A stretch of DNA of 64,000 nucleotides from Bugula neritina (Eukaryota > Animalia > Bryozoa), in assembly GCA_964035545.1 (NCBI GenBank), contig OZ037770.1:5466729-5530728 (forward strand), given 5' to 3'. The notes under the pieces are model-generated. The model saw only the letters and a list, made by a program, of their open reading frames with translations, was not told where the DNA came from and did not search any database. Position numbers and translations under genes: made by a program. Positions 3,262-28,100 of this stretch are shown in pieces (within the stretch, counting starts at the first letter, position 1; the number at the start of each line of letters is the position of its first letter).

Positions 3262-6200
3262 TGTTGTAATATTTACACAGTTTATGTAAACTTGGAGTTA
3301 CCTTGTCTTGATGTTTTAGCTGATCAATTATTATCCAAACCCGAGGAAATCAATGCAGTACAAAATGTTGATAATAGGAAGTCAAGAATTTCTTCTGAGG
3401 TTACTTATGATAAACATTCTAAAAACCCATGTGAGCAATGTGGGAAAGCCATTACAAAAGTCAGAGATGTCCAGCTTATGGAACTAAATGTGCGAAATGC
3501 AATCAATTCAACTACTGGGCCGGAGTGTGTAGGAATTTGAATAAAGTCAATGAAGTACAGCCAGAAAAGGGTGACACAGATTTTTATTTAGGAGAGACAC
3601 ATCACATTAACTCCATAGATTCTCAATCCTGGTACACCAATCTCAGAGTAAGCACCAACAAACACAAAGGACAAAGGTGCGTCTCTTAGTGTATGTGGTC
3701 CACATCATGTCTCAAGGGAGCTAATCTCAACTAGCAAAAAATTGTACGGCCCAGGGCAGACACCTTTGACATGTTTAGGAACAATAAAGTGCCAGATAAC
3801 ATCAAAGAATGAGCGCATAAATGAAGACCTTTATGTTATTCAAGATCAAACCACACCATTGCTTAGCCGTAGTGCATGTGAGAAATTAAACTCATCTCTG
3901 TGGATTCATCTCAATGCCAAATATAGAATGTGTGTGTTGATGAGAAGCTGTTCCAAGGATTGGGGAAAGTAAATACAGAGCATGTCATTACGTTGAAAGG
4001 AGATGCTAAACCATTTGCTATCCATGTTCCCAGACCCATACCTTTTCCTAGAAGAAAGTTAGCAGATGAAGCATTGATGAAAATGATTGAGGATGGAGTA
4101 ATTGTTAAAGTTGATGAACCTACTCCATGGGTGGCACCTATGGTAGTAGTTCCTAAACCTGGCCAAAACAAGGTGAGAATTTGCACAGATTATACCGAGT
4201 TAAACAAGCATATTTTGAGAGAGTTCCATCCCATGGCAACAGTAGATAGCAGCTTAGCTCAATTAGGACAAGGACAATTTTTTTCCAAGATTGATGCAAA
4301 CAGTGGATTTTGGCAAATTCCTTTAAGCAAAGAATCTAGCAAACTAACAACATTTCTGACTCATTCTGGACGATATCGCTATTTGCGACTGCCTCAAGGC
4401 CTATGCAGTGCTCCAGAGATTTTTTTTGCTGAAATGAACAATATTTTGAAGGATGTTGATGTTGTGGTTATACATATGGATGACATACTGGTTTTTGGTG
4501 AGAGCAAGGAGCAACATGACACAAGATTGCAAATAGTGTTGGAAAAACTTAAAGCTTCAGGCATTACGCTCAATAAAGACAAATGTAAATTTGGAGTACC
4601 ATCTGTTAATTTTTTTTGGTTATGTCATAGATCAGTCTGGTATACATGTTGGCCCTCGAGTTCAAGGAATAGTAGATTTTCCTACTCCGAGAAATGTAAC
4701 TTCAGTACGAAGTTTTCTTAGAATGGCCAACCAGCTATGCTAAGGAATTAGCTGCTGTGAGTGAACCAATTAGAATGCTGTTGAAGAAAGATGTTCTATG
4801 GCACTGGTCCAGCAAACAAGAAAACTCCTTCAAGAGGATAAAAGAAATATTTCAAAATGCACCAGTTTTAGCAGTCTATGATGTAGACAAAGACACCATA
4901 ATCACAACAGATGCTAGCAATGCAGGTCTAGGAGCAACACTCTTTCAAATTCAACAGGATGGCTCTCGGCGCTTGATATCTGCTGCAAGTCGTTTTTTAA
5001 CAGAGACCGAAAAGCGTTATGCAGCCATAGAAAAAGAAAGTTTAGCAGTCTGTTGCGCTATATGGAAAAGTTTTCTCCATATATACTAGTTATGAAGAAT
5101 GTGGTTATTGAAACTGATCACCGTCCACTAGTTACTTTGTTTGGGAATATCTTTCTAGACAGGCTTCCACCAAGAATTCAAGGGTTTAAACTTAGACCTC
5201 AAAGATTTCAGTATACTATCAGACATGTGAGAGGGTCTGAGAATGTTGCAGCTGATGCTCTCTCCAGGTATAACACTGCTGAAGCGAACGAGATTGATGC
5301 AGCAAGAGAAATGGAAATTGAACTTTATATTGATAACATCTACCAACATGGATCTGATAGCAGGTTGGAGCAGCTTCGTTTAGAACAGCATGAACATGAA
5401 TTACTGTCAAAAGTAATCAAATTTGTAGAAAATGGATGGCCAGGGTATTTGTCCACTGAAGATGTCCTTCTGAAGCCCTATTTTGAAAGAAGATCTCTTT
5501 TAACAATAAACAAAGGATTCTTGACACTTGGCAATCGCTTGGTAATATCGTTAGTTCAAAGAGAACAGGTGTTGCAAGATTTACATAGAGGACACTTGGG
5601 CATTACAAAATGTCAAGCACGAGCTAGAGATAGCGTGTGGTGGCCTTCTATGTCAAAGGCTATTGAGGCTATGATCAGCAATTGTGCTGAATGCAAAATC
5701 CATGCAGCTAAAATTACAGAGCCATTACGTCCTTCTGCAACTCCAGATAGACCTTGGCAACACCTTAGCACTGATTTGTTGACTTATAAAGGCCAAGTAT
5801 ATCTTTTGGTTATTGATAATTATTCAAGGTATCCTGAACTTGCCTTGCTGGGAAACTCTGACTTTTCTTCAAGTAAAGTAATAACACACCTAAAATCTAT
5901 TTTTTCACGACATGGCATACCTGAAATACTATTTTCAGATAACGGCCTGCAATATGCAAGTGCAGAATTTAAACATTTTTCTGTCGAGTATGGATTTACC
6001 CATGTGACTAGCAGTCCACATTATCACAGAGCGAATGGAGCAGCTGAGCGAGGAGTAAGGACCATCAAAAGCATGCTTGCAAAAGAGAAAGATCCTTATT
6101 TGGCTTTGTTAGCCTATAGATCCTCACCGCAGTTTAGCTCATACTCTCCAGCAGAATTGTTAATGGGTAGAAAATTGAGATCCACTGTACCCATCCATCC

Positions 6201-6919
6201 GGATAAGCTTAAACCTGAACTCCTGACCATGACTCATTCAAAAGGAGCAACGATCAGTATAAAGAGAAAATGAAAGAAAATCATGACAAAAATCCTAAAG
6301 TGCGCCCTCTTTTGCCAGTAAATAAAGGAGACAATGTGATGGTGAGAGATATGCAAAGAGAAGGCTATGCTGCCTCTTCTTCAGATAATATTACTCGTCG
6401 AACAAATGTCATGACTGACACTGGACCTTTAATACGTAACAGAGCTGATATAACTAATATCCCAACACGATGTTCTGAGCGAACCAGAAAAGTGCCACGC
6501 TACTTAACAGATTTTGATTGTACATAATTTATTATCCACGCCTGTAATATAAGTTGCACTTGATTTAATTACTGTTGTCAAACCTTTTCTTTTGTTTGTT
6601 TTTTTTTGGTTGTTGTAGCCTGAAACTAAAGAGGGGATGTTGTAATATTTACACAGTTTATGTAAACTTGGAGTTACCTTTTCTTGATGTTTTAGCTGAT
6701 CAATTATTATTCTGTTTTTGAAAAAGTTAGTCACTTCCTGTTTGACAAACTGTAGTGCTTGATTAAAATAAACTGAAGATTAAAACTAATCAACTAATAA
6801 TTGCTAGATAAATAGACATCTAAAGAATAAAACTCGAATTATCCTAGCGAAGTTTTTCTAGCATAGTAAATAAGACTCTCTTGATTGCACACCAACCCGC
6901 AATTCTGGAAATTATAACA
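3262..6919 (+). mobile_element. Ty3/gypsy LTR retrotransposon (K02A2.6-like), internally deleted and frameshifted
   Basis: 5' LTR stub 3262-3333 is near-identical to the 3' LTR start at 6638 (TGTTGTAATATTTACACAG). PPT aaagagggga 6628-6637; LTR ends ATTATAACA at 6919. Gag zinc knuckle (CAKCNQFN.WAGVC), RT (DANSGFWQ, HMDD), RNase H (TTDASN), integrase (H-H..WWP..C-C, SDNG, AERG) in gypsy order. Confidence 0.93.
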
Positions 6920-7906: not shown

Positions 7907-8408
7907 GAGGAAATATGAAATAAAACTTGAATAAAAAGTCAGCAAAATATGTATTATTAATGCATGTAAATATTATTATTATCAATTTTTAATTGAATAA
8001 AGCAAGCGTAAAGCTGAACATTGTCAAAGCTTTATAGTGCATAAAAGAAGCAGTGAAAAAACCCTTCAGTACAAAGTAATTAAAGCACACTCCACAGCAA
8101 ATAAACTAATACATAACTCAGTATGATATACTAGTTCACAACACTATAAAATATATAAATAGTAGATAAAAAATCTACCAGATAGACAGCCTTAGCGACT
8201 GTCAGATTATCATAAACATATGATTATAGAGAAGTATGTATAACAGTGAAAATCCTTTGTCAATTAAACTAATAGAATAACTATTCCTGGTTCATTAACT
8301 GAAAATTATTGTTTGTTTAATACAACATATCATGCTGGATACCCAAAGAGGGTAAATGCTATGAGTTATTTCATGTGCTAAATTTTAGGAATGATCCTCT
8401 TTAGTGGC

Positions 8409-10389
8409 TTAGGGTTTTTCCTCTTCATCCAACCCATCAAAGCCAGGAAACAGGTAAAGTCTTTTACGGGGAGGAAGAGTCTTCCAGATTACAACCAAAT
8501 TTCTGCTTCTCTCTGAATCTTCATCTGCATACAGTTTCTTCACTAATTTAGTCTGTACCTGTAGAGTAAGAAATGACTAGTATGATTGTGTACCAATGTA
8601 CTACCAGATGAGATAAATATTTACAACTCTAAGCTGCTGGAATATACCATCGTATTTGTATCAAATCTAAGCAGCAAAATCTTGAGAGTTGTCTGCTACA
8701 GTTAACAATATAAGATATATCATTGCAGTGAGACTGAGACAGTCCGTAAACCTTCACAACAGGCTGATAGAAAAATCTCAATCAAAAAATATTAATAATA
8801 AACAGCTGAGATAAAAGAAATATTTTTGTATGAAACCAGAACTCAGCAAAACTATCATTCTAGACTTACCTGCATGAAAATGGTGTAGAGATCACGGTGA
8901 CAGGCATGTTTGTAGATTGAAGATACGAGAGCTCTAACCATAGGAGATCCATACTCAGGATGTCTCTTTGATGCTATAATAAAATTAAATGCAGTCAAAA
9001 TTATGGTGTAATGAAAGCAAGCTCAGTATTTTTAAAAGTGTTTGTTTGATATACTTTTTAAAGACAAGTTTACAAGATTGGATTAAGAAGAGACAATTTC
9101 CTAAATAACTGCAACTGTGCACATGTAAAACTAAACAATCACTATTTAGTATACGTACAGCAGACGTTGCTCTTTAGAACAAGAAGATTATCAACATCCA
9201 GTCTGGTCCTACGCTCTTCTATTCTAGGTGCTGGTGGTAAGACAGGTTTGATGGGTCTTATTACACTGGGTGTTTCAGGATATACAATATCATCATCAGA
9301 TTCAGAATGTGTAGAAGAGACAGCTTCAGTTTCTTCTTCTTGAGCTGCTGCGAGACCAGATCCGTTTGGATTCACCTCAATGTTTGCTGCAAGAAAATAT
9401 TTTTTAAGCTTGCATCTTGAGCAAAAAAGAAATTCAATCAATACAGAGAGCGCTTTTCAAAGATCTTTGTTCTACTTCCACAACTCGACTAAAAATAAAA
9501 ATTTTCTATAAAACGCTGTAATTACCTCCACTGCAAGCTTCTAGGATGACAACTGTAGGTTTACGCTTTAGACTTAGAGGAGCGAGTAAATCATACAAGT
9601 CTGTAAGATTGACCTTCTCAAGGTCAGTTCCGTAGATGCAGTTATCTTCTTCACCGTGACTCATGACAACCAGTATTTGACAGCCCAAGCCGTTGTTTCT
9701 TACATTTTTTATCTCGGACTTCACAGCAGACAGCATTTCCTACATTATTTTTATAAAATGTTATTATATCTCTAAAAATTGCTGCATTTTCTATATAATC
9801 CTGGCCCATCAGCCATTTATAGCATAACTGCAACTTGACAATATTAGGAGGTTGCTAAATCTTGTTTCAATAGTAATAGGTATTTTCAGTTGAAAAGCTA
9901 ATACGTCAGCCAAGTTGAGCTGTGTAAGTAATATTAACCATAAAGGTAGGCCTAAATGAGAGCATTCACTTAAATCAGTATGACTATTGATAACTATAAA
10001 TTTTGACTCACAAGCAAGTATGCCAAAATGTGCACCCATTTTAACAAATCTTAGGTAGTATTAGAACAGTGTGTAAGTTGAGCAAATACTGAAAAAAAAG
10101 CTTGACCATAAAAGTTTGAATACAGTTTCACATAAAAAGCATTTTAACTTCTTTAAAGAAATAGTATGCTACCGTGTATATAGTTCACTACTATTGCTGC
10201 CATTCTAAAATGTTATACCTCTGCTGTCAGGTCTGTGTGTGTCTCAACATCAAACTTGAGAGATTTCAACATGGCAGACATGTTCTCAACATCAGCATTT
10301 GAACCTTCCCTGCATAAGTCTGGTCTTTCGACAAAATTTTTGTTGTTTATGATCAGAGCTTTTCCTCTGTTTCTGGTCATATTGAACAC
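8409..10389 (-). CDS. Caspase (peptidase C14A) domain over five exons: p20, acidic linker, p10
   Basis: VFNMTRNRGKALIINNKNF..REGSNADVENM; VMSHG; KPTVVILEACSG; p10 DNLLVLKS..SKRHPEYGSPMVRAL..RDLYTIF..TLPPRKRLYLFPG matches the caspase consensus. Confidence 0.93.
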
Positions 10390-13300
10390 CTGGAGGCAAG
10401 AATATTTAGAATACCAGGTACAGTGGTGACATGAAAGTCTAATAAATAAATATTGGGAGCCAATTTGGCCGAGGCTCGCAATTATCAAATTATATTACGA
10501 TCAAGTTTACTTTAGAAAGGAAGCAAAGATTCTACATTCAGGTCTTCTTTATTACTAAGTTGAAAAAATAAAGGAAGAATTACAAGCGTAGAGCCACTCG
10601 AAATGTTTTACACGCGGGTGACATGCGAGAAATCCCGTTTTGCTCAAAAATTGGACGATGAGAGGGGGATTTTAATGTGTCTAGCATGCTGAGTGAGAAA
10701 TGCGAGAAGCTCGTGCGTGTTTGATCTAATTGGCTTATTATTATTTAGCGTGAAAAATTTTTTATTCCAATTCGAGTTTTAGCTTTTAGCAAACTGAAGT
10801 AAAACAGTTTTATATAATTCGCATTTCCGCTTTGATAATATCTGTCGAACTTTCATCGCATTGGTAAAAACTGACAGCTGCGTTCAGAAATCAGACAGTT
10901 GTGACGTCACAGAGGTCAACGCTTGGCCTCGAAAACGCATTCAAAATGGCGTTTCGACGGTAGTGTGGCAGCCCCATAAATTCACTTTGCCGATGACATA
11001 GTTTTATAAACAAACGTGTAAAGGCAAGCAGTAAGGTTTAACGCTAACATTGTTAGCTAATAAATTTTTGCACTCACAACACACGCACTGTGCGTGGCAT
11101 GTCTATACGGGCACGGGTAAGGGTCTTCCCGCACGTGACGCGCATATAAAAGGCTTCGTATGGCCCTACGCTAACACTATAGTGTATTGATTGTCCAAAC
11201 CAAAATGTCTAAAGACGGCCGATAAACAATGTAATAACCTTGACAGTATTTGAAAAGAGTTGTTTAATCCTGGGGTTGTTGGTGGGCTTTAAGTTGAGTT
11301 TTATCAACTTCATATCCTTGTCTTTTTCTTCACCAGTGTGTAAAACTTCATCCTCATCAGAGAGATCACTTAGATCAACATCGTCTACAGCAACAAGATT
11401 TTATTGTCAGTATTTGATAAACGTAGGAAATTTGTTCAGTCCATACAAATAAACATTATATTTTGCCGGAGATAGCTTTGCTAAACTTGTCAAAGAAATT
11501 TACATGGTCAGAATTTCTATACTGTTTATACAGCTGTTTGAAATTAGTCAACAGCTTTTGCAAATTTTTTTTCTTTCAAACTTACCTCTATCCAGAAAAA
11601 CAAAGCTAAGAACTAACTATACTGTAAAAGTTTACCAGTTAAGTTCTTCTGCTCTATTCTTCGTAGTTTGAGCTCTGCCAACAGTGTCTCCAACATACTA
11701 ATTTCTGCTTTTGACAACGCTTCACCTGAATAAAACTGATTAGATCAATTACCTTGACTATTACTTTGAATAAAACTATAACTAGATATGTTTTACTACC
11801 AAATCTCAATATTGACACAACTAAAAAATATGACGAATATAAAAAAAATGTTTTCAATTGAATAGTTCAAACTGATGATATATTCGGAAACACGATTAGG
11901 CAATGTTTGGTGTTTAATCTAGTTATGATGAATTCAAATTAGGAGTTCGTAACTTAAACTAACTACTCAAACTGACCTTGTGTACTTTCAACGTTTGAAA
12001 ATGCATTAATGTTCAATAAAAAAAGAAAGTTTCAGTAAAAATATTCATGAATTAACTTACATGGGTAGATTAAAGCACTGGGCACTTCCTCGTTGTTACA
12101 CAATGTTGTTGAAGATCCACTACATTTCTTTACATCTGGTGATGGGTTGCTTAAGGAGCGAAGACACCAATTAGGACGAATGATTTTTTCAGGGCAAGAA
12201 ACCCCAAGCGTGATGCAGTGAGCACAGAAGCAGGCAGTGACTGGTCGACTAGCAGTCCAAGTTTCCATCACATGTCTGAGGATGTTGTTGTTGGTTGAAA
12301 TAAGTTTCTCCCACATCCTCGAAATGTGAGCAGCATCAGATGACACATAGAGTAAGACTCTTCTTGCTTTGCAGTCATGTATCAGCTGTGTGTATATTTG
12401 ATCTTGGTAAACATTAACCCCATTTTTCTTTACCCTTCTCACAGCAAACTCCTCTGGAAACAGCTCTAGCAAACCCACAGTCATTTGGTGGTAGACGTGC
12501 TGTGGTAATGCCAGACCATTAAATTGTGTCTCAGCAGCAAGTAACAGGTCTTTAGATGATGTGTAGGAAGTGTTATATAGCTCCTTGGCAAACTGCGGAA
12601 CAATGTAGTATGATTCTTTAGCATCATTTTCCAAACTACCATATAGCAAGCGGAATGTTCTGAGCAATGAAACAGCAATTTCAACATCACCAGGACTCTT
12701 GAAGGAAGTTTCGTCAGCAATCAAATATGTTAAAAGAAGTTGCATCATCATGCCACTAGTCTTGAAGCAATTAACAGATTTTTCAAAGTCTTGCTTTTCA
12801 ATCCTGACTCCTTCTATGGAATGATATGATTTGAACTGATCAACTCGATTGTGCCAAATGTTTGGGTCATGGTGATACAAAACACACAACAGTTTGGTTA
12901 CTTCTGTGATCTTGTGAAATACGTATGGCCTGAGTGTATCAATGTTCTTGTACCACAATACTTTGCCACAGTCATGCATGTATGTGAGAATAGTATCTAG
13001 CTGGCTTGGCTTCAGTTCAAAGCCGTCTTTTCTTAACACAAGCAGAATAAACCAAAAGGAGCAAAATGCTCCGGGTAAAGACAAAACCTTTTCATTCACT
13101 TTTTCCCATATCAAAGGCAAAGGCTTAACAAAATGCTGACTGCTCTCTAGAAGGGAGCTCTTTATCAAGTCGTACTCAGCATAGTCGTCTTCCTTTCCGA
13201 TCTGATATATATCTTCACTGGCAAAAACCTTTCCATTCAATGAATTGAAATGCTGAATTTTCACAAATTCCCCATCTGAGCTTTTCTCTTCATCAAGAAT

Positions 13301-16300
13301 TTCTTTGCACAGTTTCTCAGATTCTTGAAGAAAGTCATCTTTTAGCTGTTGATACTTCTCACTTTGAAACTTATCTTTGTGTGTGAAAACAAGTTTAGGT
13401 GGGCCAAGAGATGGATGAGCGAGATAGAGGTGAGACATGAAATCAAAGGCCAACTTTCTCACAGCCTCTCTGTTTGTAGATGCTTTCGAAATCTGATCAT
13501 ACTGCTCCATGTTGACTACAATGACTGGTACACAATTCTGTCTCAGTGTCAAATGGTATGTGATATGGTAGACCTCCTGGCCTCCCATATCAATGAGACG
13601 AAGAGTTGTACCATCCACCTCCACCTCTTCCACATTGAACACTTTTGTGGTCTCATCATACTCTGCATTCGAACTTCTCTTAGTCAGAACTCTCTTCCTG
13701 CCAGTGCTTTGTAATGTTTTGATCAGACTGGTTTTACCTGCCATGGTGTTCCCTAACACCGCTATTGTAGCAAATGGCAAGTTTCTACCAGTGCCCTTGG
13801 CCAAATCTGTGTAGTATTGTCGCACAGCATCTAATCCTCTCTGACAAATTTCTAGTGGAGGAGATGTAAGAGCATTGCATTTGTTTATATTCAGTGTATG
13901 GAGATGTGTTAGCTGTAGTATCTCCGGGTTCAAGGATGTCATGAATATGTTGAAGAAAAGATTCAGTGTGTGCAGATTACTCAATATGCACACTGAATAT
14001 GGTAGACTGGTGAAGTTATTTTCATTTATGTCTAGTGTCTGTAGCTCCTGTAGACTCTGTATTCTAATAAAATATTATATTTCTATTACCATCATAAACT
14101 AGAGGTAGTTGGTATACAATAATTAGGCAAGGTAGTATTGTGTGATAGTGACTATAGTAACCTCATATGAAACACTTTTAACTATCTAGCAATCAGCCTC
14201 ATGGTAGCTACAGAAAACAAGTACATATAAGCCACAACCATCATATTATATATACTGTATGTAAATTGGTGTTGTGTGTTGAGAGTAGAGAAAACGTAGA
14301 ATAAGTATTGGAAGACTAGAAAAAGATATTAGAGGATGCCGGCCTATAAGTCAGCAGGTATAAACCTGTGTACCTATCACCAGAAAAAGCAGCGATGACA
14401 TCAGAATCATGGAATACGATAGATTTGAACATTCCACTTTGCCTCAAAAAACCATATTCAAATACCTGGAGAATACAATTCACCAGGAAGCAGAATCTAG
14501 AGGTACAGGTGCGCATTGGCAACACCTAGGATAAATGGAGAGAACTGACTGAGGTAATATGTAACAATAAAGGAGAAATGAAGAGAGCTGACAATAAAGT
14601 TTGAAAGAAACTAAAGTCGCTTTTTCACAAGACAGTAATATGAGCAGTTCTACTGTATGGAGTGTAAATGTAATGTTACGAAATAGGATGTTTACTGAAA
14701 TTATAACTCGTAGTACAATCACACACAATCACAATATCATCAACCTCAAATTAGCCCAACCACTAGCTGCCAGTAGTCAACCTAATGCTTCTTTAATTAC
14801 TATCCCAAAACAGTAGCTACGCATGTAGAATGATTCATAGTCAGCAGCTATGCTTGCATTAGCTGTGATGTCACACGATGCTTGTTTACTTCAGCCCACT
14901 TCTTGAAACAGTAAGATCCTACCCCAAAATAGTAAATTGTAAAATCATACCTCTTACAACACAATAATGTTTATCAAATGGATTAGTATATAAGACAAAA
15001 CCATTTTTAGTAGTTGCAATATTGTTAGAGTCATGCTGTCAGTTTGGACAGCATTAAGTTTATGTAAGACTACCGAAGAGTAGCATTATTTGAAAGACTG
15101 TGCAAAGCCACAGCATCAACATAACAGTAGACTAGGAGAGAGAGAAAAGAGGTAATGAGCATCTATTTACAATTATATATCGTTATTACATTTTTATGTT
15201 ATAAAGTTTTTAATAATATGGGCTGTAGTTGCATGCTATGTTGAATCATTATTTCATGCTGCTATCTACAATTTATGATATACATTGCTAGTGCTTTTAC
15301 ATACATACTTATTATATTACGTACATTTTGTTTGCCTTATGCCTTATGTTGTATCATTATTATTCTAGTTTTTACGGTCCGCATTTGGTCAGTATTTGGT
15401 GACTCAAATAAACTCTGATCACGTCTAAAACCCTCCCTATTCCTAGTCAGGCTGTATAAGCTAGAGTGTCACTCTAAAGCAAGAGCCATAGCAAAGAGTG
15501 TCATTCTATAGTAAACATGGCCATTGACCGATTACCTTGCTGAAAGATTTAGCATAGCGTAGGTGAGAACCAGTCTTAAAGATGACAAAACCAGCGAGAG
15601 AATTAGGCAGTATTTACACATATATATAGAAGAGAGATGACATGAGAAGAGTACATGTGATGAGAGTTAGAGCAAAGAGAAATCGAGATGCTCATAGCGT
15701 AGTCAGCAGGACGCAATCAGGAAAAATAACCAATTCTGTTTTCTCAATGAAGAAGACCCTCAGAATGAAGTTATGTAGAAAAGTTTATTTAGGCTAGGCC
15801 TCTGGCAGCCACCCACTACCCAAGCAAGACATAAAGGCAATAGGTGAGGGTACTGCCATACACTGCGTTTCCATGACTTCGCATAATGCGAATGAATGCC
15901 CCATACGGATTATTTGTGGTTTGTGGTTTGCATTAACTTATAGTTGCGGTTTCATTCGATGTAACTGTTTCCATTAGCCGAATGAAAAAATCCATTCGCA
16001 ATAATTCCCATATATGCATAGTATCTCATTGTTTCATCAAAATTTTGGAAGGAAATGAGAAGAGACACTAATAATTTATATAAATGAAATAAAAAAACCA
16101 TAAGGATCATTTTGATAGGCATCATGCCTATGGAAATGCTTTTGTTATGTCTTAAAATTAGCTTGGGACATTGCTATTATGGAAAACAATGAGGCGTCCT
16201 CAAACTTTTTCACAGCACTGTACCTGACCACAAAATCTATTGTTAACCTAAGCCAGTCAGTAGGAGTGTACACATCAGATAGTCAACAAGTCTCTTAGCC

Positions 16301-19300
16301 CACAACTCTTTAGTCATTAGTAATGAAAGGCAAAGTCTGACATATCTCAACATAACTGTATGTTACCATACTTTGTACCACATATAATATGATGGGTATA
16401 ATTGATTTTGTCATTTTATCTTATATACAGTGTTGATGTAATAATATGACTACATTATATAATTCATTTATATATGTCTTTTTTGTACCTGCAGGTTTAA
16501 ATAATATAATATACATGCTAGTAACACTATAATAGAGGGTAATGAATTTGTAAGTAAATATCATTATAGTCATTACAGAATACATAAAAACAATATTATT
16601 ACTCTGTGTGCCTGCATTCTGTTACTGCAATTTTTTATGTTATAGTTTATCATAGATCATGTGACCCTGAGTATTAAACTTTATGTTTTATTCAACAGAG
16701 TACTTGTTTCATGTCATCAATAAAGAGAATCAGTGTTGTCAAACCTTTGCATTGACTTGTATTGAATACTAGCACAATGTAGTCTACTGTATTATAATAA
16801 TATATACTGTATATATATTATGCTGCTTGTGCATTCAAACAAGGAATAAAGTTTAGGCAGCAATGCAAATTTCAGTGCAGAGCTAATAAGTCAAGACAGC
16901 TAATGAGGATTCAACAGTAAATAAATACTAATAAACTATAAATGGCTGCTTTATTATAAATTATGAAGGTTTTCATATATATTTTACGACAAATCGTAGA
17001 ACTATGTTATTTTCAAGATGTGAGAGACTATAATACACATGTAACTTCAAAAAAACTCCAGATTATATACCTCTATATTTTTAACCTAGTAATATATAAT
17101 GGGGTACTAATTAAAATTATTTAGCATGCATAAATATGTGAGTTACTGTATTTTTAAACAACACAAAAGCTGTGAAACACAAACCTCTCAGGTAGAGTAG
17201 ATAATCTACAGTCCTTCATACACAACTCTTTAAGTGATGTGAGTGATGACACAACTTCTGGTACTGTGTAGAGAGGATTATCTCCTATGTCTAGTTTCTC
17301 TAACTGAGTCAGCTGACACAGACTATAATATAAAGTGTGTGATATATGTAGTCTAATGCATAAGGATAATATATATACTGTATACATTTCTTGTGTATTC
17401 AAACCAGGTAAAAAATTCAAGTAATGCACTTACTGTTACAAGACACCACAAGAGGTCGTTTCATTATTAAATACAAAACGTTTTACTACAGAATGGTATA
17501 TAATACCATAGCTTACAACTGTGTTACTTCAAGGATATAACAAACTATTACATGCCTTTGAAAAATTCACTTTATATTTTTAACCACAGCAATATATAAT
17601 ATAATATACTTTAATATTACTTTTTAAGCATATAAATATATGAATGTCTCAGTTTTTGAAACAAGGAAAGCATACCATGACACTAGTACACTTACAAAAC
17701 TACTAAATAGAATTTAGAACTCCAATCATTTTTCAACAATAAAGCATTAAAATTTCACATACACTATAAAAGCCACCCAGAAAAAAAGGAACTGAATACA
17801 GAACAATCAGCCTAAAGAGTTTTGTTGTAACCAAGTTATTTTGAAGATGTGAATTATTGAATGCTAGAAACAATACAAAATCTGTGAAACACAAACCTCT
17901 GAGGTAGAGTAGATAATCTACAGCCTCCCATATTCAACTCTTCAAGTGATGTGAGTGATGACACAACTTCTGGTACTGTGTTGAGAGGATTATATCCTAC
18001 GTCTAGTCTCTCTAACTGAGTCAGCTGACACAGACTGTAATATAAAGTGTGTGATACTTGTAGTCTACTGCATAAGGATAATATATATTATATACTGTAT
18101 ACATCTCTTGTGTATTCAAACCAAGTAAAACATGCAAGAAACACACTTATTGTTGCATAGTACAGCGGAGAGTTTTTGTAGTTATATTGTAGGTGAGGAG
18201 AGAAAGCTTCATTATGCAAAGTTAGCTATTAGCTTATAGTACATGGGGCCCCATTCTACACGCTAAGTAAGTTAATCTGATGACTAAATTGTAATGTAAT
18301 ATATTTGTAGTTTATGACTTAAAGTAGCCTTTTCTATACTACTATAAACTGTGAATTACTTCAGTTTTCAGCTACATAAAACATGATTTATTTAATGCTA
18401 TCAACTAGCAGTATACAGGCAGCTTTAAACCCTCTAATTACTACAACCAGCTTACTTGGTATAGTTACAATGTTGCACATGTCCTTATTTTTATGTATAT
18501 TATATTGTATAAATATGTTATCAGCAAAAGGATGCTACAGCTTCAGCATCTATTATAGGTTATTATTTAATAAACAACTAAACTCATTTAACATTCACAC
18601 AGCTATTGTAATAGACACTCACTTGTCCAGACTTGCCCTGTCAGTCAGGTGAGAAACAAGTAGACGCAGGGCTTTACCAGCAATCTCTCCAATGTTACTT
18701 GGAAGTTTCCCTTCCAGTTTCAGATCTATGATATCATAACTCCCAACTTCACGTTTTACCTCAGCAGTAGTATATAATTTGGTATTAGCCCACCATACAT
18801 CTGACCAGCTCACAGGAGGCTGTCCAGAATGTCTGAACCAGATTTTCATATTCTCTGTAACATAATACAGCAATAGTGTGATTACTACACAGTGCTAGCA
18901 GGTGGTGTCTATCATTCTGACACCTGTCATCTACTGTTTGAATATATTTATTATATGGTGGATGTTAATATTCATATCTATAACTAAATTACACATAATT
19001 ATTTTATTGAGTAGCTTTAGACTCTTCATAATTAGTCATTTTGTGTATAATTTCCAGAGCAGTGTTGATTACTTTGCAATAAGACAACTCTAACCAAGCT
19101 GCTTTCATCATCTTACAATTTTTCAAAGCATTAAGTTGATTGTTGACATAAACAAGTATAGGATGTAGTGATGATGTATTAATCAGTATCTATTAAATTG
19201 TATTGACATAACATCTACATTCACTTATCTGTTACCTTTCATACTTCAAGGTTTACATACATGTACTAAAGAGTTGGACATACAAACATTACATACAGAT

Positions 19301-19594
19301 GAAGATAACAATGAATAGTGATGGATACAACCAAACATATGCATATTCTTCACATTAGTATTTGATGTAAAATCCAAAACTTACAGATTAATAATCTTAC
19401 ATTAGTTTTACATCTAAAGCTACAGTTTGATGTATTACTCATATATGAGAAGCCTGTGCAGTGTTGACTAAATATAATAATCAAAATTATACAATTATAA
19501 TAATTTACATCCTATTATCAGTATTGGAATATTTTTATTGTCCCGGAACAATTGAATAAAGTAGTTATTAAATTCACTCACCACCAGTTGCCAT
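8409..19594 (-). CDS. LRR-ROC-COR-caspase fusion protein (MFHAS1/MASL1-like Roco protein with C-terminal caspase), 12 coding exons, ~1208 aa
   Basis: Hand-spliced exons 19594-19582, 18854-18623, 18034-17897, 17322-17185, 14063-12061, 11725-11636, 11384-11239, 10389-10219, 9739-9526, 9386-9159, 8973-8870, 8558-8409. All introns GT-AG, phases 1,2,2,2,1,1,0,0,1,1,0, total 3627 nt with no internal stop. Start gccATGG (MATG|ENMKIW); ends ...KRLYLFPGFDGLDEEEKP*. Motifs: LRRs, GNTMAGKTS, DMGGQE, THKD, COR, RGKALIINNKNF, SHG, EACSG. Confidence 0.88.
10585..11172. mobile_element. Non-autonomous TIR element (MITE-like) in a Roco-caspase intron
   Basis: Imperfect ~50-bp inverted termini AGCGTAGAGCCACTCGAAATG... 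/ ...GGCTTCGTATGGCCCTACGCT; higher GC than the flanks; no clear TSD. Confidence 0.7.
12061..14063 (-). CDS. Large exon encoding the last LRRs, ROC GTPase and COR domain
   Basis: ORF 12032..13993. LRRs (LQELQTLDINEN, LSNLHTLNL, LTHLHTLNI) and LTSPPLEIC cap; P-loop GNTMAGKTS, G3 DMGGQEVY, G4 THKD typical of ROC; COR-like LTYMHDCGKVLWY; C-terminal CFCAHC. Acceptor ttattag at 14064, donor gtaagt at 12060. Confidence 0.93.
14380..14620 (+). mobile_element. RTE-clade LINE RT fragment (degenerate), antisense in a Roco intron
   Basis: Reads FKYLENTIHQE...VQVRIGN..DKWRELTEVICN with frameshifts, typical of RTE RT. Further RTE-like C-terminal remnants near 15640-15775. Confidence 0.6.
15861..16006. mobile_element. 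Truncated copy of the small CACTGCGTTTCCAT-TIR MITE
   Basis: Near-identical to 49592-49725. Confidence 0.75.
17185..17322 (-). CDS. LRR exon copy B (138 nt, phase 2-2, two 23-aa LRRs) of the Roco-caspase gene
   Basis: ttatag|...|gtttgt boundaries; LCQLTQLEKLDIGDNPLYTVPEVVSSLTSLKELCMKDCRLSTLPE (within ORF 17154..17429). Confidence 0.9.
17897..18034 (-). CDS. LRR exon copy A (138 nt, phase 2-2, two 23-aa LRRs) of the Roco-caspase gene
   Basis: ttacag|...|gtttgt boundaries; translates LCQLTQLERLDVGYNPLNTVPEVVSSLTSLEELNMGGCRLSTLPQ. Missing from the ORF track. Confidence 0.9.
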
Positions 19595-19657
19595 GGCTAC
19601 CAAATGGTGGATTGTCTTTCTTGGTAATAAGTTTTAGCTAAAGTGTAGCAGCTCCAT
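19595..19657 (-). other. 5' UTR part of the first coding exon, with short uORF (MELLHFS*)
   Basis: Acceptor gttttag at 19658-19664 precedes this segment, implying further upstream non-coding exon(s). The ATG at 19657 closes at TAA before the main gccATGG. Confidence 0.45.
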
Positions 19658-21304
19658 CTAAAACATATATTAAATATAAAGTAAAATAATATGATTACTC
19701 ATCATATTCATTATATTCTTAGAGTACATTAATATTTCTAAATATAATGAATATTTGGCTAAACAATACACCAGATCATCAAAAGTTTCACAACTTCCTG
19801 AAATAGGTGTAGGCAGCTATTAAATTTAAAGCAGTAGAATATAATTACTTGCTATTTTCACCCTTTGTAAAGTACAAGGATATTCTCGAAAAAGAGTCCA
19901 GATCTGACTAAGCAATACACCAGGTGAACAAATTTGAATCAGAACATTTGACAACTCTCAAATACTTATAGATTTTATAACATATATATATACGTACATA
20001 TAGTCATTACTAAAAAAAGGATTCCTTTGCTTCAAATGCTTGAAAGTTGAATAAAATGTTACTTAAGCGGACTAATGACATTAATTTTTCATTTGACTTG
20101 ACACAGTTTGGGGTTTGAGAAAAACTCATCTCAAGGGACTTCTTAAAATATTTATTTTCACGCAAGCAAGATAGTTATAATAATGTAACTGCAGAATCAA
20201 AAACTGCATTCGACATATCCCCAGGTGCAGAAGTATTACAAAATGTTGTACTTCTGAACAAAGCTATATCAAACATTATCACCCAGCAATTTACAAACTC
20301 CGATATAAATGGACCAAACCTTACAACATGACTATAAAACAGTCTAAGGAGATGTGGAGAATTATTAAAAAGTGGAAATTCCACAATTCATGACTAACTC
20401 TACAAGATTACTGACCTCTACTAGCTGCAGTGCTATTGAAACATGTGGCCTAGTAACTTATGTTCACTTCTTTCAAATTAAGTATTTTGCATTTATTCGA
20501 GCTCAATAAAACATACAATATATAGCTGCACTCTTCATTTTTCAAACAGGTAGTAGCACTTTCTGTTTAGTCAAGCTAGCATAGCAAATAATGTGTAATG
20601 ATACCAAACATGAATTAGTTACTAGAAACTCTGTTGTAGAGAACCAATAGCGTGGAATTTAAGATCATCACTCATACTGGTTATGATAATAAAATAGCTA
20701 CAGAAACTATCACAGTTGGTCTGCCATTCTTCCATTCTGAACCAACTATAAAAGATGATACCCTTCAGCATACCTATGCACTGCTATACCTAATTTGTAT
20801 CATTAGATATTAACAAGACTACATACACACAGACTTGTAGTCTGTATCTCCTACTCTGTAGTACTGATTAGAGACTTACATAGTTTTACTATTTCTACTC
20901 TTAATATATATTTTCTGCTGAGAAGAGTCGATTACTAGAAGAGGGTTTAGAGTGATGACAGTAAGACAGTGGGTGAAGATTCCTACACAACTACCAGAAT
21001 ACCTGCGTTTTTCAGTCACCTGAACCAGTGTAAGCTAGACTATTAGTGTAAGGGTGGAATATATAAACAAAAAACAGTAACAATTCTAATGGCTGTGCCA
21101 GGTTATATATATGTGACCAATTAATCCATTTACGCAAATAGATTCTCTTAAATCAAATACATATAAGATATATTTTGATTGAACAGGTTGATCTTGCATT
21201 CTTTTCATTAGATTTAGGATAGACAAGAATTCAAAAACTAGATGCAATACATGTTATGTTCTACACTTTAGATGTAAACAAGATAAGATTTCACATATTA
21301 CATG

Positions 21305-21412: not shown

Positions 21413-24400
21413 TTATATTTTATAATTGATCAAAGAACAAAAAAGTTTATTTTCAGAAGTATTTCATCATCTCTTCAAATTTTCAGGTTTTTCACTATCC
21501 TCATTGCAAAGAAAAACTTTACTTACTATTTTCCGCTAATGTGAGGCAACTTTGGTTGCAAGAGATACAACAATGTTCTTTGAAACGCTAACAAATGAGA
21601 TGAGTAGGTAATTGGAAAGGGCCAGATAGAATATATTAAAAAACTGAAACTAACTAACTAAAAGTAAAAAGAACTGCAAAATAGAATAGTTAAAATCATT
21701 ACAACTTATACAAATTTTCAAAAAGTCATAGATGGATTTAACAAGTTTTTTCTCTTGACTATCATCACAAAACACCAACAAAACTGAGAACAAATTTTAA
21801 GCTAAATCTATTTGCTCTTCATATTTTTTCCAAATTATTGTATGTTATTCAAAAAATATATATAAAACAATAAATTACTTCATCCTAATTGAGACATGCA
21901 ATACAACCATAACTTATCTAAAAATAAGTCGAGCCAGGTAGGAACACCACATGCACAACAACAACTAACACAGTGCAATAACTAAAACTAAACTAAGCAC
22001 CAGCGAGGCAACTTTCTTAGCTGTATAAAATATGTTTAAGCATTTTGCTTCACTTAAAGACCAAAATGAAACCTGACATATGCTAGAGTGTATCTAAAAT
22101 AAAACAATTTGTAATGACCGTAATAAATATGTTTGATTGTTATATAATTTAATTCCTATTCAACACTATGTAATTTTACATGGGCAAGCCGATGGTCATG
22201 TTTATGAGGTATATTAGAGTGAAGACTTTGAAGAAAATGTAAAAACCTGTGGGCTATTATTGCTCCATTGCAAGAAGCACCAATATGTTAAAGAACAAAC
22301 AGTAATCACATTAATAACATGTGGTCTTTGCTATGCTCTTGGTTGTTACCAAAATGATCTCAAATTAATTTAAAAAAACTGTTTCAAAAGATTACAACAT
22401 TGTTATCATACTGATAATTAATTTTTATTCTAATAATATTCAGAAGTAATATTGTTGGAGGTATCATAAATATGACTGAGCATGCTTGGACTACCTCGTT
22501 TAACTAGCTATTGAAGACTGCTATATTATAGCCAACGCAGTCCATACCTAACAGTTGAGCTGACAAGTTGCAGATTTAGATATCATGCAGATTATTGGAT
22601 GTTTATAATAAAGTGCAGTTTGTGTTGAAAACGATACAAAGGTATGTTTTTCTGTTTGTGCTGTCAAACATTAAAGCTATACATATAGAGTCATATTATA
22701 TCATGTTATTGAGGCTTCTGCAATTGTTAAATGTTATGATTTTTTGAACCAAAGAATGCTGTTGTGTGATCTTTTGTTATGTTATGCTGTTGGATGTGGA
22801 TTAAAATGTGATTTCAGATCAGCTGTTTAGTTAGATATAATGAAGAATATATAAAATAATAATTGGTAAACAGAAAATAACCTTTACAAGTTCTACAAAT
22901 AGAGAGCTGCTAAGACTGGAGCCAGCAAGGTATAAGATAATATAAAAAGGCAGTCCATACAAATTGCTAAAATAGACAACTATTTTATTCACTATTAGCA
23001 TTAGTGTTTTACTGCCATGAAAAAAATTTCTGTCTATTGTTTATGATAATTAGAGTGAGAACAAACCGGAAAGATATCAAATTAAAAATTAAAGAGGTAA
23101 ACAAAGTGCTTTATCTATGACACTTGTTCAGTTAATTATAACAATGCTATAACACATGTCATGGTATAACTATCAAGCATGATATATTTACCAATAACTG
23201 TTGGCACTGCAATGGTACCAATGACTATGTAATGTAACAGATTTGAAAATCTATCCATGCCTTAGTTGTTTTTATGTGAATTCTTTAACTGTTCTATTTA
23301 CATGAACGCCTTAATTAGTCTCATTGCATAGTTTTCTTTGTTCAAATTTCGTTTGTTTTCTTTTGAGCTCCATTTCATTTGAGCATCGAACATCTCAAGT
23401 TTGATTCAACTTTAGACACTTGAAACATTGCAAAAATTTAGATTGGAAAGTCTTGGAAGTTTGGAGAGTTTAAATTTATGAGTGTAGAAAGGCGATCTTT
23501 TCTAGTATTGTATCAATCTGTAATCGCAGCTCGCCAACTGCTCTTCTACTTGGAGTTATTGATACTGATTAGGCAAACATAACCACAGGTTCTCTTATTA
23601 AGGACACCCAATGAGAAAATCAATTTGACCCAAAATCTGTCCTTTCTCTGACTACATAAAACTTTATGTAGTCAGAGAAAGCCAATAAAAGCCCACAAGT
23701 TCATCAAACGGTTTGAGTTTATTTTGGGACCATAGCTAATGCTCTACCAAAAGAAGACACAGGAAAGTGACAGGAGGAGGACCGGAGATGAAGCCACTTA
23801 CTATGGAGGCTCTAGCCCTGGGTTTCTAAAAAGTTCAGCAGTGCAATAGGCACCACCTGGAAACAACTTTCATTTCAAGACATCAGGATTCAATAAAGAT
23901 GGTGATGTGGTACAGTTCAGTTCGCAGTTTTTGAATGTGGCCATGTGGATTTCTGCCAACTGCAATCCCAGATCTAACGCCAACATGAAAAAAGTCTAGC
24001 CTGTGCTAAAGAAGCATGGGCAAAACTCTTGCCGCTGGGTGAGAAGCCCCTCACAGATCTCGGAAGCCGCAAAATCTCACTGAAGCTCTGGCTTGGCCAT
24101 TCACCAAGCGGCTAGCAAGGTTACCCGGCGAATTTGTGGAAAAAAATGTTCTTCCTACGATCAAATGTTCCCCATATTGCCCTCCAAACTTCAGAAATTT
24201 CCAAGGTTGTCAAGGTTCAACAGAGTCTTCTTTTAAGACTCAAAACATGTTTCTCCCAGAGACTGATTGCTTCAAAAACAGCTAATTATACAGAAGCGAC
24301 TACTTCCTGCCTAGGAAAGTTGCTGGTAAAAATGCCACTTTTTTTGACACCGGGTGCTCCACTAAACTGCTGAGTTACGTCTCTTCAACACTCTTGGTGC

Positions 24401-24899
24401 TCGAGAGCTAGCAAACCCCGAGACGTTTGATAGTAATCGTGGTTCTTTAGCAAACAGAGCATGTATTCCATCATAGCACTACCTATAAGAACTTGTGATT
24501 ACCAGACCCTAGTGAAATCAGGCGTTGGCTATAGATTCTTTGTTAGTTTATTTACTCGATTGAGCTGGTCAGAAGCACAGAAATTCTAACGGTCTGAGCC
24601 GTTGTTCATGAGCGAACTGTAGGCAGTGCCTGCACATAGAGAACTAAAACGGGTGACTTGCTATTCTTGACAAATTATAGCACCCGTGCAAGATAAGTGC
24701 CTACAGCTGCGAACATGGGCATTATGGTCCGAACAACCGCTCTGTCCCTTAATAGCATTAAGCTGTGCTGACTCAAAAAGAAGCTACTTGGCGTGGTAGT
24801 GGATATGTGTAAGCCAAGAAGAATAAAAGATGACCTAGTAAAAAAAACAAGTGGCAGGAAGTGGTTGAGTTCCGACACTTCTGTAGCCACCGGGATCCT

Positions 24900-25120
24900 C
24901 TTCAGTTCAACCAAGATGAGTTACTAGCCATATCACTAGCAGCAGCCACCCAACACCAAAAAAGAAGGAGCAGTCTACCCACTTGCTTTCCAACGTGATT
25001 TGTAATGGGGGACTAAAAAGCAGGCCCATGCCGGGGTCAATCAGATAACCACTTACCTATAGTTGTGGTGGAACTAGCATGAAATGACTTGGAACGGTAT
25101 TGTGAAGTCTGTCATGCTAG
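24900..25120 (+). mobile_element. Old gypsy integrase zinc-binding-domain remnant
   Basis: RDL*WGTKKQAHAGVNQ... aligns with RELIWDTHKQAYAGASQ at ~29500. Confidence 0.5.
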
Positions 25121-25169
25121 CATGAATAGCCATCCCACTAACTATGCCCTGGCTGGGTGTGGCACATAG

Positions 25170-28100
25170 TGTAGTGGAAATCAAAGTACGCACTAACACC
25201 ACATATTTGTTTTTGTTGTAAGTTGTTTTGCCCCGCCACATTTTTTTGTATGTTTAATTAATTAAATATGTGAGTCGAAGCTCGGCCAAATTCGGAGCCA
25301 AAGGTACGATTTCGGAAGGGTCTGTACGATTTTGGGCAGATCCTTTTCGACTTCGGCCGGCGGATCACCTAACTTCGGCCGAGTTTCAGACCCCCATAGT
25401 GCCGAAAAATGTTTGCTGTATATAAAGGCGAGCATTTTCAGTGCTAATCAGTATTACACTGGAGCTCGCAGAAGAAGGAACTAACAACCAATAAAGATTA
25501 TTGAATGCAAACTACAAATTTTATTCAAGAAATGACAACATTGGCATGCAGACTACGTAGTCTATTTTATACAAACCCGCAAAATCATAAAATTGGTAGC
25601 AGCGATGGGATAAAATAGATAAGTACGACAAGCAGCCATTTGAGAAGAAGGAAGAAAAAACGATGGGAGATGAAGGAGAGGAAGAGATGGTGGGAGAGAG
25701 AGAAGAGGATGATCGTCTCACTATAGAAACTCGCATCACGGCCTTCCGAGAAGTTAGCAGGGCCGGGCATGCAGTACTTGGAGACAGGTATCGCCTCAGG
25801 CGCCCGATTTTTGGAGGCGACGGAGACATCGAACAATTCATTAAGAAGTTTAAAGAGGTAGCCACCCTCGCCGAATGGCCGGCACAGGTGCGCCTTCTTC
25901 ATCTCCGTACTTGCTGAACAGGTCAAGCAAAGAGTTATGCTCTCGGGCATGATGTCAGGCACATTTTTCAGGCCTTCAGGTCTCGCTTCGGGCTGACCGC
26001 CTGAGCCGCCAGGGATCATCTACGAACCATACGCAGAGATAGGAAAACCTCATTTCAAGATCATGCAGATGCTATTGAGGCACTAGCACAGGTAGCCCAT
26101 AGCAATGACGAACCCGAAGCACAAAGAAGCGCTGTGTACGAGGCCTTCTTTCATACCATCAACAACCCCTGGTTGCAACGCTATTACTTAGCAGCGAAGG
26201 TTACTACTATCAAGGAAGCCCTGGCTTTGGGCAAGGCCTACTACCAAGTGGACGAACCTCAGTGCGCGGATTTCACCACCAATCAGGTTGAGGAACAGCT
26301 GAAGGTCCTCAAGCCGGATCCACCAAGCTCACAGAATGTGGCAGCCGCTACCGCTACACCATCGCCTGACCAGCTGACCATGTTGATGGACATGGTGAAA
26401 GGCTTACAGGCTGACATGAAGCAGATGCAACGAGAACAGGCTGATAGACGGACGCCCAGACCTCGGGGCAAACCAATCAGCACTTCGCACCTCACCTGTT
26501 GGGGATGTGGTGCCCGGGGACATGTGCGAAGGCAATGCTCCCAAGAGAGAAGGGTGTCTTTAAACACCCAAGGCTCGCGGAAACTTCCGCCAACCGTGGG
26601 CCCCAAGCCATCCCCATCCGGGAGGAAATAACCAAAAGGACCTTTTCCAGGCCTGCTGATGTCAAGTGGCAGGCACCTCGGAGACATCAGAGACTGCCAA
26701 GTCTACGCGATTCTCTAGCTCAGCCACTGAAGACCCGGGTGGAGCCTAAAGATACAGGATGGCAGGCACCTCTGAGATCTCGGAAACCGCAAGGTGTGCC
26801 CGATCCTCCGGCCTGGCCACTCCAAAATTGGTTCGCAAGGTTGCCTGAAGAGACTGTGGAAAAAGATTCAGCTTACTCGCAAGAGTATCCTAAGTTACCC
26901 TCCCAGTCTCAGAAAACCCCCGTTGTCTGTAAGACAAAGAGGAGGCCCGCTGTAAGGGCCCAAGAAGTGTCTCCCCCAGAGACTGACCGACCCAGGAGCC
27001 CCCAGCCGTACGAAAGCAGCTACTTCCTATCTAGAAAAAGTTCGTGTAAAGCTACCACTTTCCTGCTGGGGACAGGGTGCACTACAAGCCTGCTAAGTCG
27101 GCGTCTCTTCGACACACTCGGTGCCCGAGAGCAGGCAAGCCTCGAGCTGTACATGGGAGCACATGGTACGTTGGCGGACGGATCGTTTATTCTTTTCTAC
27201 GACATTATTAGGTTACCTTGACGCGTTCGTGATCAAGCAATTGACAGATGTCATTTCTGGAGAAACACCAGTGTTACATGGATTCCCAGAAGTCGGTGGT
27301 GGTGATGGCTGGGAAAGAGCTCGCCTATGTGGACAAGTTTGGTAGGCCCTTGGTGGGCGGAGTCCAGGTAGTACAGGCCTGCAGGGTTCCAGGAAGATCC
27401 CAAGCTACTCTCCGATGTAGAGTCAACTGCAAGGGGATTGCTGCCCAGGAGTGGTGAAGGGAACACACGGAGCAATTCAACTGGCGAACAGCCTTAATTG
27501 GCTAGACTGTCGGAGGGAGCTCCTCGTGCAGTGCATCAACCCCTTCACGGAACCAGTCCAATTGTTGGCTGGGGCACTGGTGGGAAAGTACCACTCCATC
27601 CAAGAAGCTGATGTAAGGCCGGCACTGGACACAGTGGCCGACACTCAGGGAGACTCTCCTCGTGCCAGTCGAGGAGCAGTCCTAAAACACATGGCTAACC
27701 TTTACGGTGGAGCATGTGGCAACTGTACTAGTAGTGCCAAACGCCAGGTACTGACTGGCTCAACTACTGATGTAGTACAGGGGAATTGGGCTGATTAAGG
27801 TTATCTCTCATGAGATACCCCTGGCAGCCGGCACCACCCCTATCCGACAGCCGACCCGACGGAGAAGGAGGTGAGCCGACAGGTGCAGGCTCTTCTCGAC
27901 TGGGACTTGATTGAGCCTGCTCACGGTGCGTGGAGCTCTCCCGTAGTCCTGGTCAAGAAGAAGGATGGTAGCTGGAGACACTGTGTCAGCTACCGCAGAC
28001 TCAACAGCGTCACCATCCAGGATGCCTACCCTCTCCCACAAATAGATGAGTCTCTGGATGCCCTCGCAAGTAGCAAGTACTTTAGTACTTTGGATCTGCT

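Follow-up and report, generated by a model that had tools for sequence, protein, structure and literature searches.

A tandemly expanded bryozoan gene family that joins leucine-rich repeats and a Roc-COR GTPase module to a caspase

A 64,000-nt stretch of the genome of the cheilostome bryozoan Bugula neritina (GenBank assembly GCA_964035545.1, contig OZ037770.1; C6:5466729-5530728, hereafter the window) contains an intact gene of 12 exons that encodes a single chain of 1208 residues. From the N-terminus, the predicted protein comprises a family-specific module, approximately seven leucine-rich repeats (LRRs), a Roc GTPase domain, COR-A and COR-B, a linker of 80 residues, and a complete caspase. 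The gene belongs to a family that has expanded in tandem and numbers at least 66 genes in this 216-Mb genome. We consider it fairly probable that this is an intact Roco-caspase gene whose product senses through its LRRs, switches through Roc-COR, and is activated by proximity of its fused caspase domains.

The 12 exons lie on the minus strand (19594-8409; Table 1) and formed one open frame of 3627 nt, made up of 1208 codons and a TAA stop, both on direct reading of positions 8300-12200 and 13900-19800 and in an exon-wise script that covered the phase arithmetic, the split codons, and the translation of each exon. All 11 introns were of the GT..AG type, all phases matched, no split codon was a stop, and no exon contained an internal stop. 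The script thus confirmed the claim of an initial annotation of this DNA that 12 in-phase exons give a 1208-residue frame. Every motif named there (GNTMAGKTS, DMGGQ, THKD, SHG, and EACSG) was located, and the phases given for the two bridging exons (1-1 for exon 6 and 1-0 for exon 7) were reproduced. The further statement that no start occurs between COR and the caspase does not hold to the letter: an in-frame ATG is present in each of exons 6, 7, and 8 (in exon 8 at its beginning), and therefore translation could, judged by sequence alone, also start internally. The absence of CARD and DED from the same interval was upheld; no death-fold domain (CARD, DED, or Death) was found between COR and the caspase, either in the window gene (Pfam, exon by exon) or in models from the bryozoan Watersipora. 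Searches used single exons or public full-length relatives, and the evidence at the protein level is thus exon by exon. Neither a secretion signal nor a membrane segment was seen when the predicted protein was inspected by eye; its location is probably cytosolic.

A run search gave 13 small sequencing runs, attributed either to the same organism or to a "symbiont metagenome"; their label as RNA is a guess and is not on record. To assess splicing, contigs of four of these runs, from four studies, were compared with window positions 8400-14100, and the joints that they contained were canonical (CT..AC, i.e., GT..AG). The initial annotation had made the fusion depend on the bridging junctions 12061/11725, 11636/11384, and 11239/10389, and contigs cross all three at the subfamily level; a single 396-nt contig covers the end of exon 5, exon 6, and exon 7. 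Splicing from COR to the caspase is demonstrated in these presumed RNA runs for a subfamily of 92-94% identical copies. At 10 of the 13 best-supported variant sites, the contigs carried the letters of the paralogues L013-L015 rather than those of the window; these 10 include the six diagnostic sites 11272, 11279, 11284, 12716, 12968, and 13353. Therefore, the splice pattern applies to the subfamily or to another strain, and not strictly to the window copy.

The window copy might accordingly be silent, or might yield separate products (a transcript encoding Roco only, with its end near the read-through stop that follows exon 5, and/or a short caspase initiated at the ATG of exon 8), with the fusion made only by its paralogues. 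The contigs always carried paralogue letters and never those of the window at diagnostic sites; the ATGs of exons 6, 7, and 8 would also fit such a division, as would an insertion of approximately 650 bp in intron 7 that is not found in L014 or L015. However, L013 has this insertion too, the spliced form occurs in copies that are 92-94% identical, all 12 exons are open and all 11 introns canonical, and no contig supported an alternative end. In addition, Logan contigs drop rare variants, so that the missing window letters are weak evidence. We regard a silent or split window copy as distinctly unlikely.

Two further features of the contigs were observed. Noncanonical joints at 11370/12243 and 12290/12963 (TA..CT and TT..CT) recurred in several runs and may come from paralogue contigs, assembly chimeras, or deleted copies. 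Contig coverage of the insertion in intron 7 (approximately 10500-11200) was heavy (bins 10692-11073), and this insertion probably represents a transcribed repeat of the dispersed kind.

In exon 5, the Roc domain was recognized by Pfam (31.3 bits; cut-off, 27), and COR-A scored 17.8 bits, below its cut-off of 35.3. The 667 residues of this exon were aligned with 39 relatives, and the resulting set of 40 sequences was the basis of a family profile and of an AlphaFold model. Compared with the PDB, the profile matched the Roco protein of Chlorobium tepidum (CtRoco; 2e-23) and LRRK1, the latter from Roc into COR (9e-17); LRRK2 was matched too. The model was confident (predicted local distance difference test, 88.7; predicted template modeling [TM] score, 0.87), and the structures retrieved with it by Foldseek were LRRK1 (3e-22), the crystal structure of the CtRoco LRR-Roc-COR region (9e-20), LRRK2, and the isolated COR domain 3dpt (6e-10; TM, 0.62-0.65). 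Because a confident model matches both Roc-COR structures and 3dpt, COR was assigned after Roc despite its subthreshold Pfam score; as modeled, the Roc-COR tandem is real.

The residues expected to bind nucleotide were invariant or nearly so in the 40 sequences: G104, G109, and K110 of the P-loop, Thr139 of switch I, D158, G160, and G161 of the DxxG motif, and T227 and D230 of the T-H-x-D motif. This conservation argues for a Roc domain that is predicted to be a working nucleotide switch. The THKD found at G4 is a form that we take to be the one seen in LRRK2. Prediction of a COR-B homodimer (exon 5 residues 470-667, two copies) returned a score of 0.00 with an uncertain fold, which is evidence neither for nor against dimerization. 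A C-x-H-C...C cluster (C613, H615, C616, and C655; window 12215-12226 and approximately 12098-12100) was observed at the end of COR-B, outside the Pfam COR models; it was invariant in 40 of 40 aligned relatives, Lingula included, and may be a zinc site.

Peptidase_C14 was detected by Pfam in exon 8 (41.8 bits) and in exon 9 (28.4 bits; cut-off, 21.4), and exons 8-12 aligned along the entire caspase domain of full-length family members, with exons 10-12 corresponding to the small subunit. The caspase family profile matched CED-3 (4e-37), and caspase-3, caspase-9, caspase-6, and caspase-1 were matched as well. The SHG and EACSG motifs aligned with SHG and QACRG of CED-3, which places the catalytic dyad, and both arginines of the S1 pocket were present (in CREGS and in the K-R-H that precedes GS). 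By sequence, the domain is a complete caspase of the CED-3/caspase-3 type with a His-Cys dyad. Its pentapeptide is EACSG rather than QACxG, i.e., Glu replaces the Gln of the S1 pocket in the window copy and in most sampled paralogues, and therefore activity or Asp specificity may differ. In 7 of 17 sampled paralogues the pentapeptide was EASSG or EASS, with Ser in place of Cys and with open frames (L018, L022, L023, L024, L025, L026, and L027, all at loci on C6); these copies may be pseudo-caspase regulators or decoys. A QAC pentapeptide was observed in two others, L030 (QACSG) and L031, in which the match stops one residue early.

These substitutions bear on whether the fused caspase is an executioner at all. 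It could instead be a signaling or scaffold module (compare the paracaspase MALT1 and cFLIP) or a protease that does not cleave after Asp, in which case the family would regulate signaling. Replacement of the conserved Gln in the window subfamily and loss of the Cys nucleophile from open frames are both in line with this. In contrast, the window gene keeps His, Cys, and both S1 arginines, its best structural relatives by sequence are CED-3 and caspase-3, and two of the sampled paralogues (L030 and L031) have the QAC form. A nonexecutioner role thus appears unlikely to us.

Between COR and the caspase, exon 6 may, as a guess from its residue pattern, fold as a helix, and the acidic linker of exon 7 contains D-x-x-D-like runs at which we would guess that it is cleaved. 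A tblastn search detected exon 7 in 19 of the 20 sampled paralogues.

The 5′ exons of the model lie outside the positions compared with spliced contigs, and their placement rests on conservation. Exon 2 had no Pfam match, and 60 copies of the same family were found in the genome (E ≤ 1e-5); in each of the six copies that were checked, a Roc-COR exon followed 5-17 kb downstream on that strand. A region of 81 nt around the putative start was 82-97% conserved in 13 paralogues and, in the five that were checked, was located approximately 0.5-1 kb upstream of exon 2 of the same copy. Because exon 2 and the start region are conserved, and stand at the expected place where coordinates were compared, this part of the model is supported. 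Matches to the Pfam LRR_4 model (23.6 bits in exon 4, and 19.6 bits) were both below the 27-bit cut-off, and the LRRs were therefore called from the repeat pattern and from the strong LRR matches of the family profile in the PDB. The cassettes of exons 3 and 4 were distinguished by 12 nucleotide and 9 residue differences. Gene copies varied in how far exon 2 lies from exon 5 (approximately 5 to 17 kb), which fits variable numbers of LRR cassettes; the window copy has only two. A third copy of the intron sequence upstream of the cassette was observed at approximately 16800-16870 with no exon behind it, and it looks like a relic cassette.

Across the genome, at least 66 full-length matches to exon 5 were found (59-94% identity), and 62 of these were without a stop. 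This count is a lower bound, since 66 of 163 first-look candidates were scored. The copies clustered on C6 (2.5-6.3 Mb) and C1 (32.5-35 Mb). Twenty loci were sampled from at least 65 paralogues, and caspase exons were found downstream of the Roc-COR exon in all 20. In 17 of the 20, exon 8 and at least three of exons 9-12 followed on the same strand (all five caspase exons in 16), and in one further paralogue the caspase exons started at the edge of the locus. Together, the spliced contigs, the 20 sampled paralogues, and the independent RefSeq models of Watersipora establish that the LRR-Roc-COR-caspase architecture put forward there is real.

Two candidate explanations were rejected in the course of this comparison. 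L016 and L021 had first appeared to be copies without a caspase, as none was found within 6 kb, but their caspase exons lie 7-10 kb downstream. Higher conservation of exons than of introns was considered as proof of coding constraint and was discarded: between the window copy and L013-L015, introns were 83-97% and exons 88-98% conserved. Such similar conservation of introns and exons is a sign of recent duplication or of gene conversion.

Retroelement open reading frames (ORFs; gag-type aspartyl protease and RNase H) were observed between the Roc-COR and caspase exons of L016 and L021, where they stretch or disrupt the genes. In the window itself, plus-strand ORFs with reverse transcriptase, integrase, RNase H, and a Tf2-type SH3 domain were observed at 3930-6273 and approximately 24000-31000 (the latter with 45-55% GC); they are remains of long terminal repeat retroelements that flank the gene. 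No Rfam match was found in the window. More divergent Roc-COR subfamilies, with 24-26% identity to the protein P0155, were observed on C2-C5.

Table 1 Coordinates of the gene, its exons, motifs and junctions in the window, and of two paralogous loci
Feature	Position	Strand	Description
Exon 1	19582..19594	-	Putative start codon and 10 nt; M-A-T-G; phase 1 donor GTGAGT; start inferred from sequence
Exon 2	18623..18854	-	Family-specific N-terminal module, 76 aa
Exon 3	17897..18034	-	LRR cassette, 2 repeats, 138 nt, phase 2-2
Exon 4	17185..17322	-	Duplicate LRR cassette, 2 repeats, 138 nt, phase 2-2
Exon 5	12061..14063	-	667 codons; last approximately 3 LRRs, Roc GTPase, COR-A, COR-B, C-x-H-C...C cluster at end
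Roc P-loop (G1), GNTMAGKTS	13727..13753	-	Motif located by sequence
Roc switch II (G3), DMGGQ	13577..13591	-	Motif located by sequence
Roc G4 motif, THKD (T-H-x-D)	13373..13384	-	Motif located by sequence
Exon 6	11636..11725	-	Bridging exon, 90 nt, phase 1-1, 29 codons
Exon 7	11239..11384	-	Bridging exon, 146 nt, phase 1-0, 48 codons, acidic linker
Exon 8	10219..10389	-	Start of caspase large subunit, with S1-pocket Arg (CREGS); Peptidase_C14, 1.3e-10
Exon 9	9526..9739	-	Catalytic His in SHG, 9661-9653; catalytic Cys in EACSG, 9541-9527
Exon 10	9159..9386	-	Intersubunit linker and start of small subunit (alignment, spliced contigs)
Exon 11	8870..8973	-	Small subunit; K-R-H..GS motif with second S1 Arg
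Exon 12	8409..8558	-	Caspase C-terminus and TAA stop
Junction	12061/11725	-	Contigs of 2 runs
Junction	11636/11384	-	Contigs of 4 runs
Junction	11239/10389	-	Contigs of 4 runs
Junction	10219/9739	-	Contigs of 4 runs
Junction	9526/9386	-	Contigs of 3 runs
Junction	9159/8973	-	Loose contig ends match
Junction	8870/8558	-	Contigs of 2 runs
L016	C6:3583303-3593302		Retroelement-bearing paralogue
L021	C6:2533429-2543428		Retroelement-bearing paralogue

An exhaustive HMMER search with exon 5 returned 92 proteins below 1e-30. The long matches were RefSeq models of Watersipora subatra, named "MFHAS1 homolog" or "uncharacterized." Several of these hold LRRs, Roc or COR, and Peptidase_C14; the complete ones were 1419 aa and 1413 aa long, and an additional complete model of 1105 aa was obtained by a caspase-domain search. 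In B. neritina, the GenBank protein KAF6038145.1 (CASP8 in UniProt; 1341 aa) combines LRRs with a caspase and falls into one cluster with a Roc-COR match; its best match in the genome of the window was only 86-92% identical, and the window therefore stems from a related lineage or bryozoan and not from the assembly of that protein. When long proteins with a similar caspase were sought by word matching, Watersipora alone was found; such a search is too insensitive for other phyla. The look-alikes in the ESM Atlas scored below 0.9, belonged without exception to generic MFHAS1 or Roco clusters, and serve as leads only.

Among the nearest nonbryozoan relatives of the Roc-COR exon with a retrievable name were proteins of the brachiopod Lingula anatina, a lophophorate relative (P0148). 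At least four Lingula paralogues (P0157, P0146, P0161, and P0162; MFHAS1 homologues in RefSeq) had the order LRR-Roc-COR-A-COR-B-CARD, an architecture for which no description was found in the literature searched. The N-terminal architecture is the same in both lophophorates, whereas the Lingula module ends in a CARD, which would recruit a separate CARD-caspase, and the bryozoan gene skips the adaptor. That the same module ends in a CARD in one relative and in a caspase in the other strengthens the case for a functional link from Roco to caspase, and by analogy it is the strongest indirect support for it; the Lingula protein looks like a two-component version of the same pathway.

In Roco proteins, COR mediates nucleotide-dependent dimerization, and induced proximity is what activates initiator caspases. 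Given these two established properties, we infer that caspase activation in the bryozoan protein would be GTPase-gated; by this analogy, a proximity-driven activation of the fused caspase is plausible. The LRRs would probably recognize a ligand, whether microbial, viral, or otherwise non-self, and Roc-COR would probably convert this recognition into a nucleotide-dependent change of oligomeric state. Such a change would bring the fused caspase domains together and activate them by induced proximity, and the acidic linker might then be cut, releasing the protease. In this way a single GTPase-based chain would correspond to an NLR or Apaf-1 platform together with its CARD-caspase. Several points weigh against this proposal. 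The LRR region is short, and CtRoco dimerizes in its GDP-bound or nucleotide-free state but is monomeric with GTP bound. To these must be added the paralogue letters in the contigs, the Glu of the pentapeptide, and the Cys-to-Ser replacements described above.

The cue that is read need not be a pathogen. The family might serve colony biology, i.e., allorecognition, in which colonies fuse with or reject one another, or the cyclic degeneration of polypides that is typical of bryozoans, with the LRRs reading self and non-self or endogenous cues. Not only immune receptors but also allorecognition loci typically form large tandem families that diversify fast; bryozoans are colonial, and allo-incompatibility is among the processes linked to apoptosis (PMC8195603). 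The protein is apparently cytosolic, with no membrane segment seen by eye, and intracellular sensing fits this better than cell-surface allorecognition does. A role in colony biology in place of defense is, in our estimation, improbable.

The proposed design has precedents. Prokaryotic proteins with LRRs, an AP-GTPase (Roc), COR, and an effector, caspase-like peptidases among the effectors, were described computationally, and those of bacteria with caspase effectors were predicted to be immune systems that counter invaders (Kaur et al. 2021, PMC8195603). The bacterial systems and the bryozoan family share rapidly evolving N-terminal LRRs, Roc-COR, a variable C-terminal effector, and multiple paralogues per genome; the features that mark bacterial AP-GTPase conflict systems (LRR, Roc, COR, and a C-terminal effector in one chain, with many diversified paralogues) were all found here. 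In contrast to them, the bryozoan gene is multi-exon and spliced, and by profile comparison its caspase belongs to the animal CED-3/caspase-3 type, a hint that Roco and caspase were joined within animals. In amphioxus, LRR-caspase and TNFR-caspase "shortcut" proteins have been interpreted as linking recognition directly to apoptosis (Zhang et al. 2008, PMC2575513). As in the bryozoan gene, a recognition domain is fused directly to an apparently active caspase; the amphioxus proteins differ in that Roc-COR is not reported, the phylum is another, and the genes are few. Roc-COR was mentioned neither in that paper nor in the amphioxus caspase survey.

Among animal Roco proteins, MFHAS1 (MASL1) has LRR, Roc, and COR in the same order, and the bryozoan and Lingula relatives are named after it; the relationship rests on these database names and on the list of language-model look-alikes. 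To our knowledge, MFHAS1 has no C-terminal enzyme. The bryozoan gene, in contrast, has a complete caspase after COR, and its family numbers at least 66 members rather than a single one. In LRRK2, LRRK1, and DAPK1, a Roc-COR tandem regulates an enzyme on its C-terminal side, with a kinase or death domain as the output, whereas the bryozoan output would be a cysteine protease. NLR inflammasomes and the Apaf-1/CED-4 apoptosome share with the model proposed for the bryozoan protein a repeat sensor, a nucleotide switch, oligomerization, and activation of a caspase by proximity. However, the bryozoan switch is a Ras-like GTPase with COR and not a STAND ATPase, a dimer and not a ring is expected, and the caspase, instead of being recruited through a CARD, forms part of the chain itself. 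Neither NACHT nor NB-ARC was found in the exons of the window gene (Pfam, by exon), the NTPase being Roc, and the window protein is thus an analogue of the NLR/STAND platforms and not a member.

The novelty claimed by the initial annotation stood in part. A literature search found no paper describing or testing an animal Roco-caspase, and no characterized animal example was encountered; the architecture itself is represented by the bacterial LRR-Roc-COR-caspase proteins (PMC8195603), in part by the amphioxus LRR-caspases (PMC2575513), and by unnamed GenBank and RefSeq models. Bacteria and amphioxus thus provide precedents for the concept; as an expanded animal family, it appears to be undescribed.

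A six-frame domain search of the genome found one weak, partial NACHT match, four CARD matches, and 161 Peptidase_C14 exon matches, counts that may miss domains split between exons. They are suggestive of a Roco-caspase family that occupies the niche filled by NLRs elsewhere. On a broader and more tentative view, which we think could be right but would not yet back, bryozoans have largely replaced NLR/CARD platforms by a lineage-specific set of single-chain Roco-caspase receptors, with dimerization and caspase activation licensed by a Ras-like GTPase in place of a STAND ATPase, Cys-to-Ser copies as decoys or regulators, shuffling of LRR cassettes as the source of diverse recognition, and the two-component Roco-CARD of Lingula as the ancestral form.

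If the proposed mechanism is true, this would be the first GTPase-gated caspase of an animal, a death or immune receptor built on Roc-COR instead of a STAND ATPase. It would offer a natural readout, proteolysis or death, for the Roc-COR switch, the logic of which is still debated for LRRK2, and animals would have arrived independently at the sensor-switch-effector design that is predicted for bacterial Roco proteins. Judged from its sequences, the family looks like an undescribed kind of animal cell-death or immune receptor, and the contrast of at least 66 Roco-caspase genes with hardly any NACHT detected suggests that one phylum has solved cytosolic surveillance in another way.

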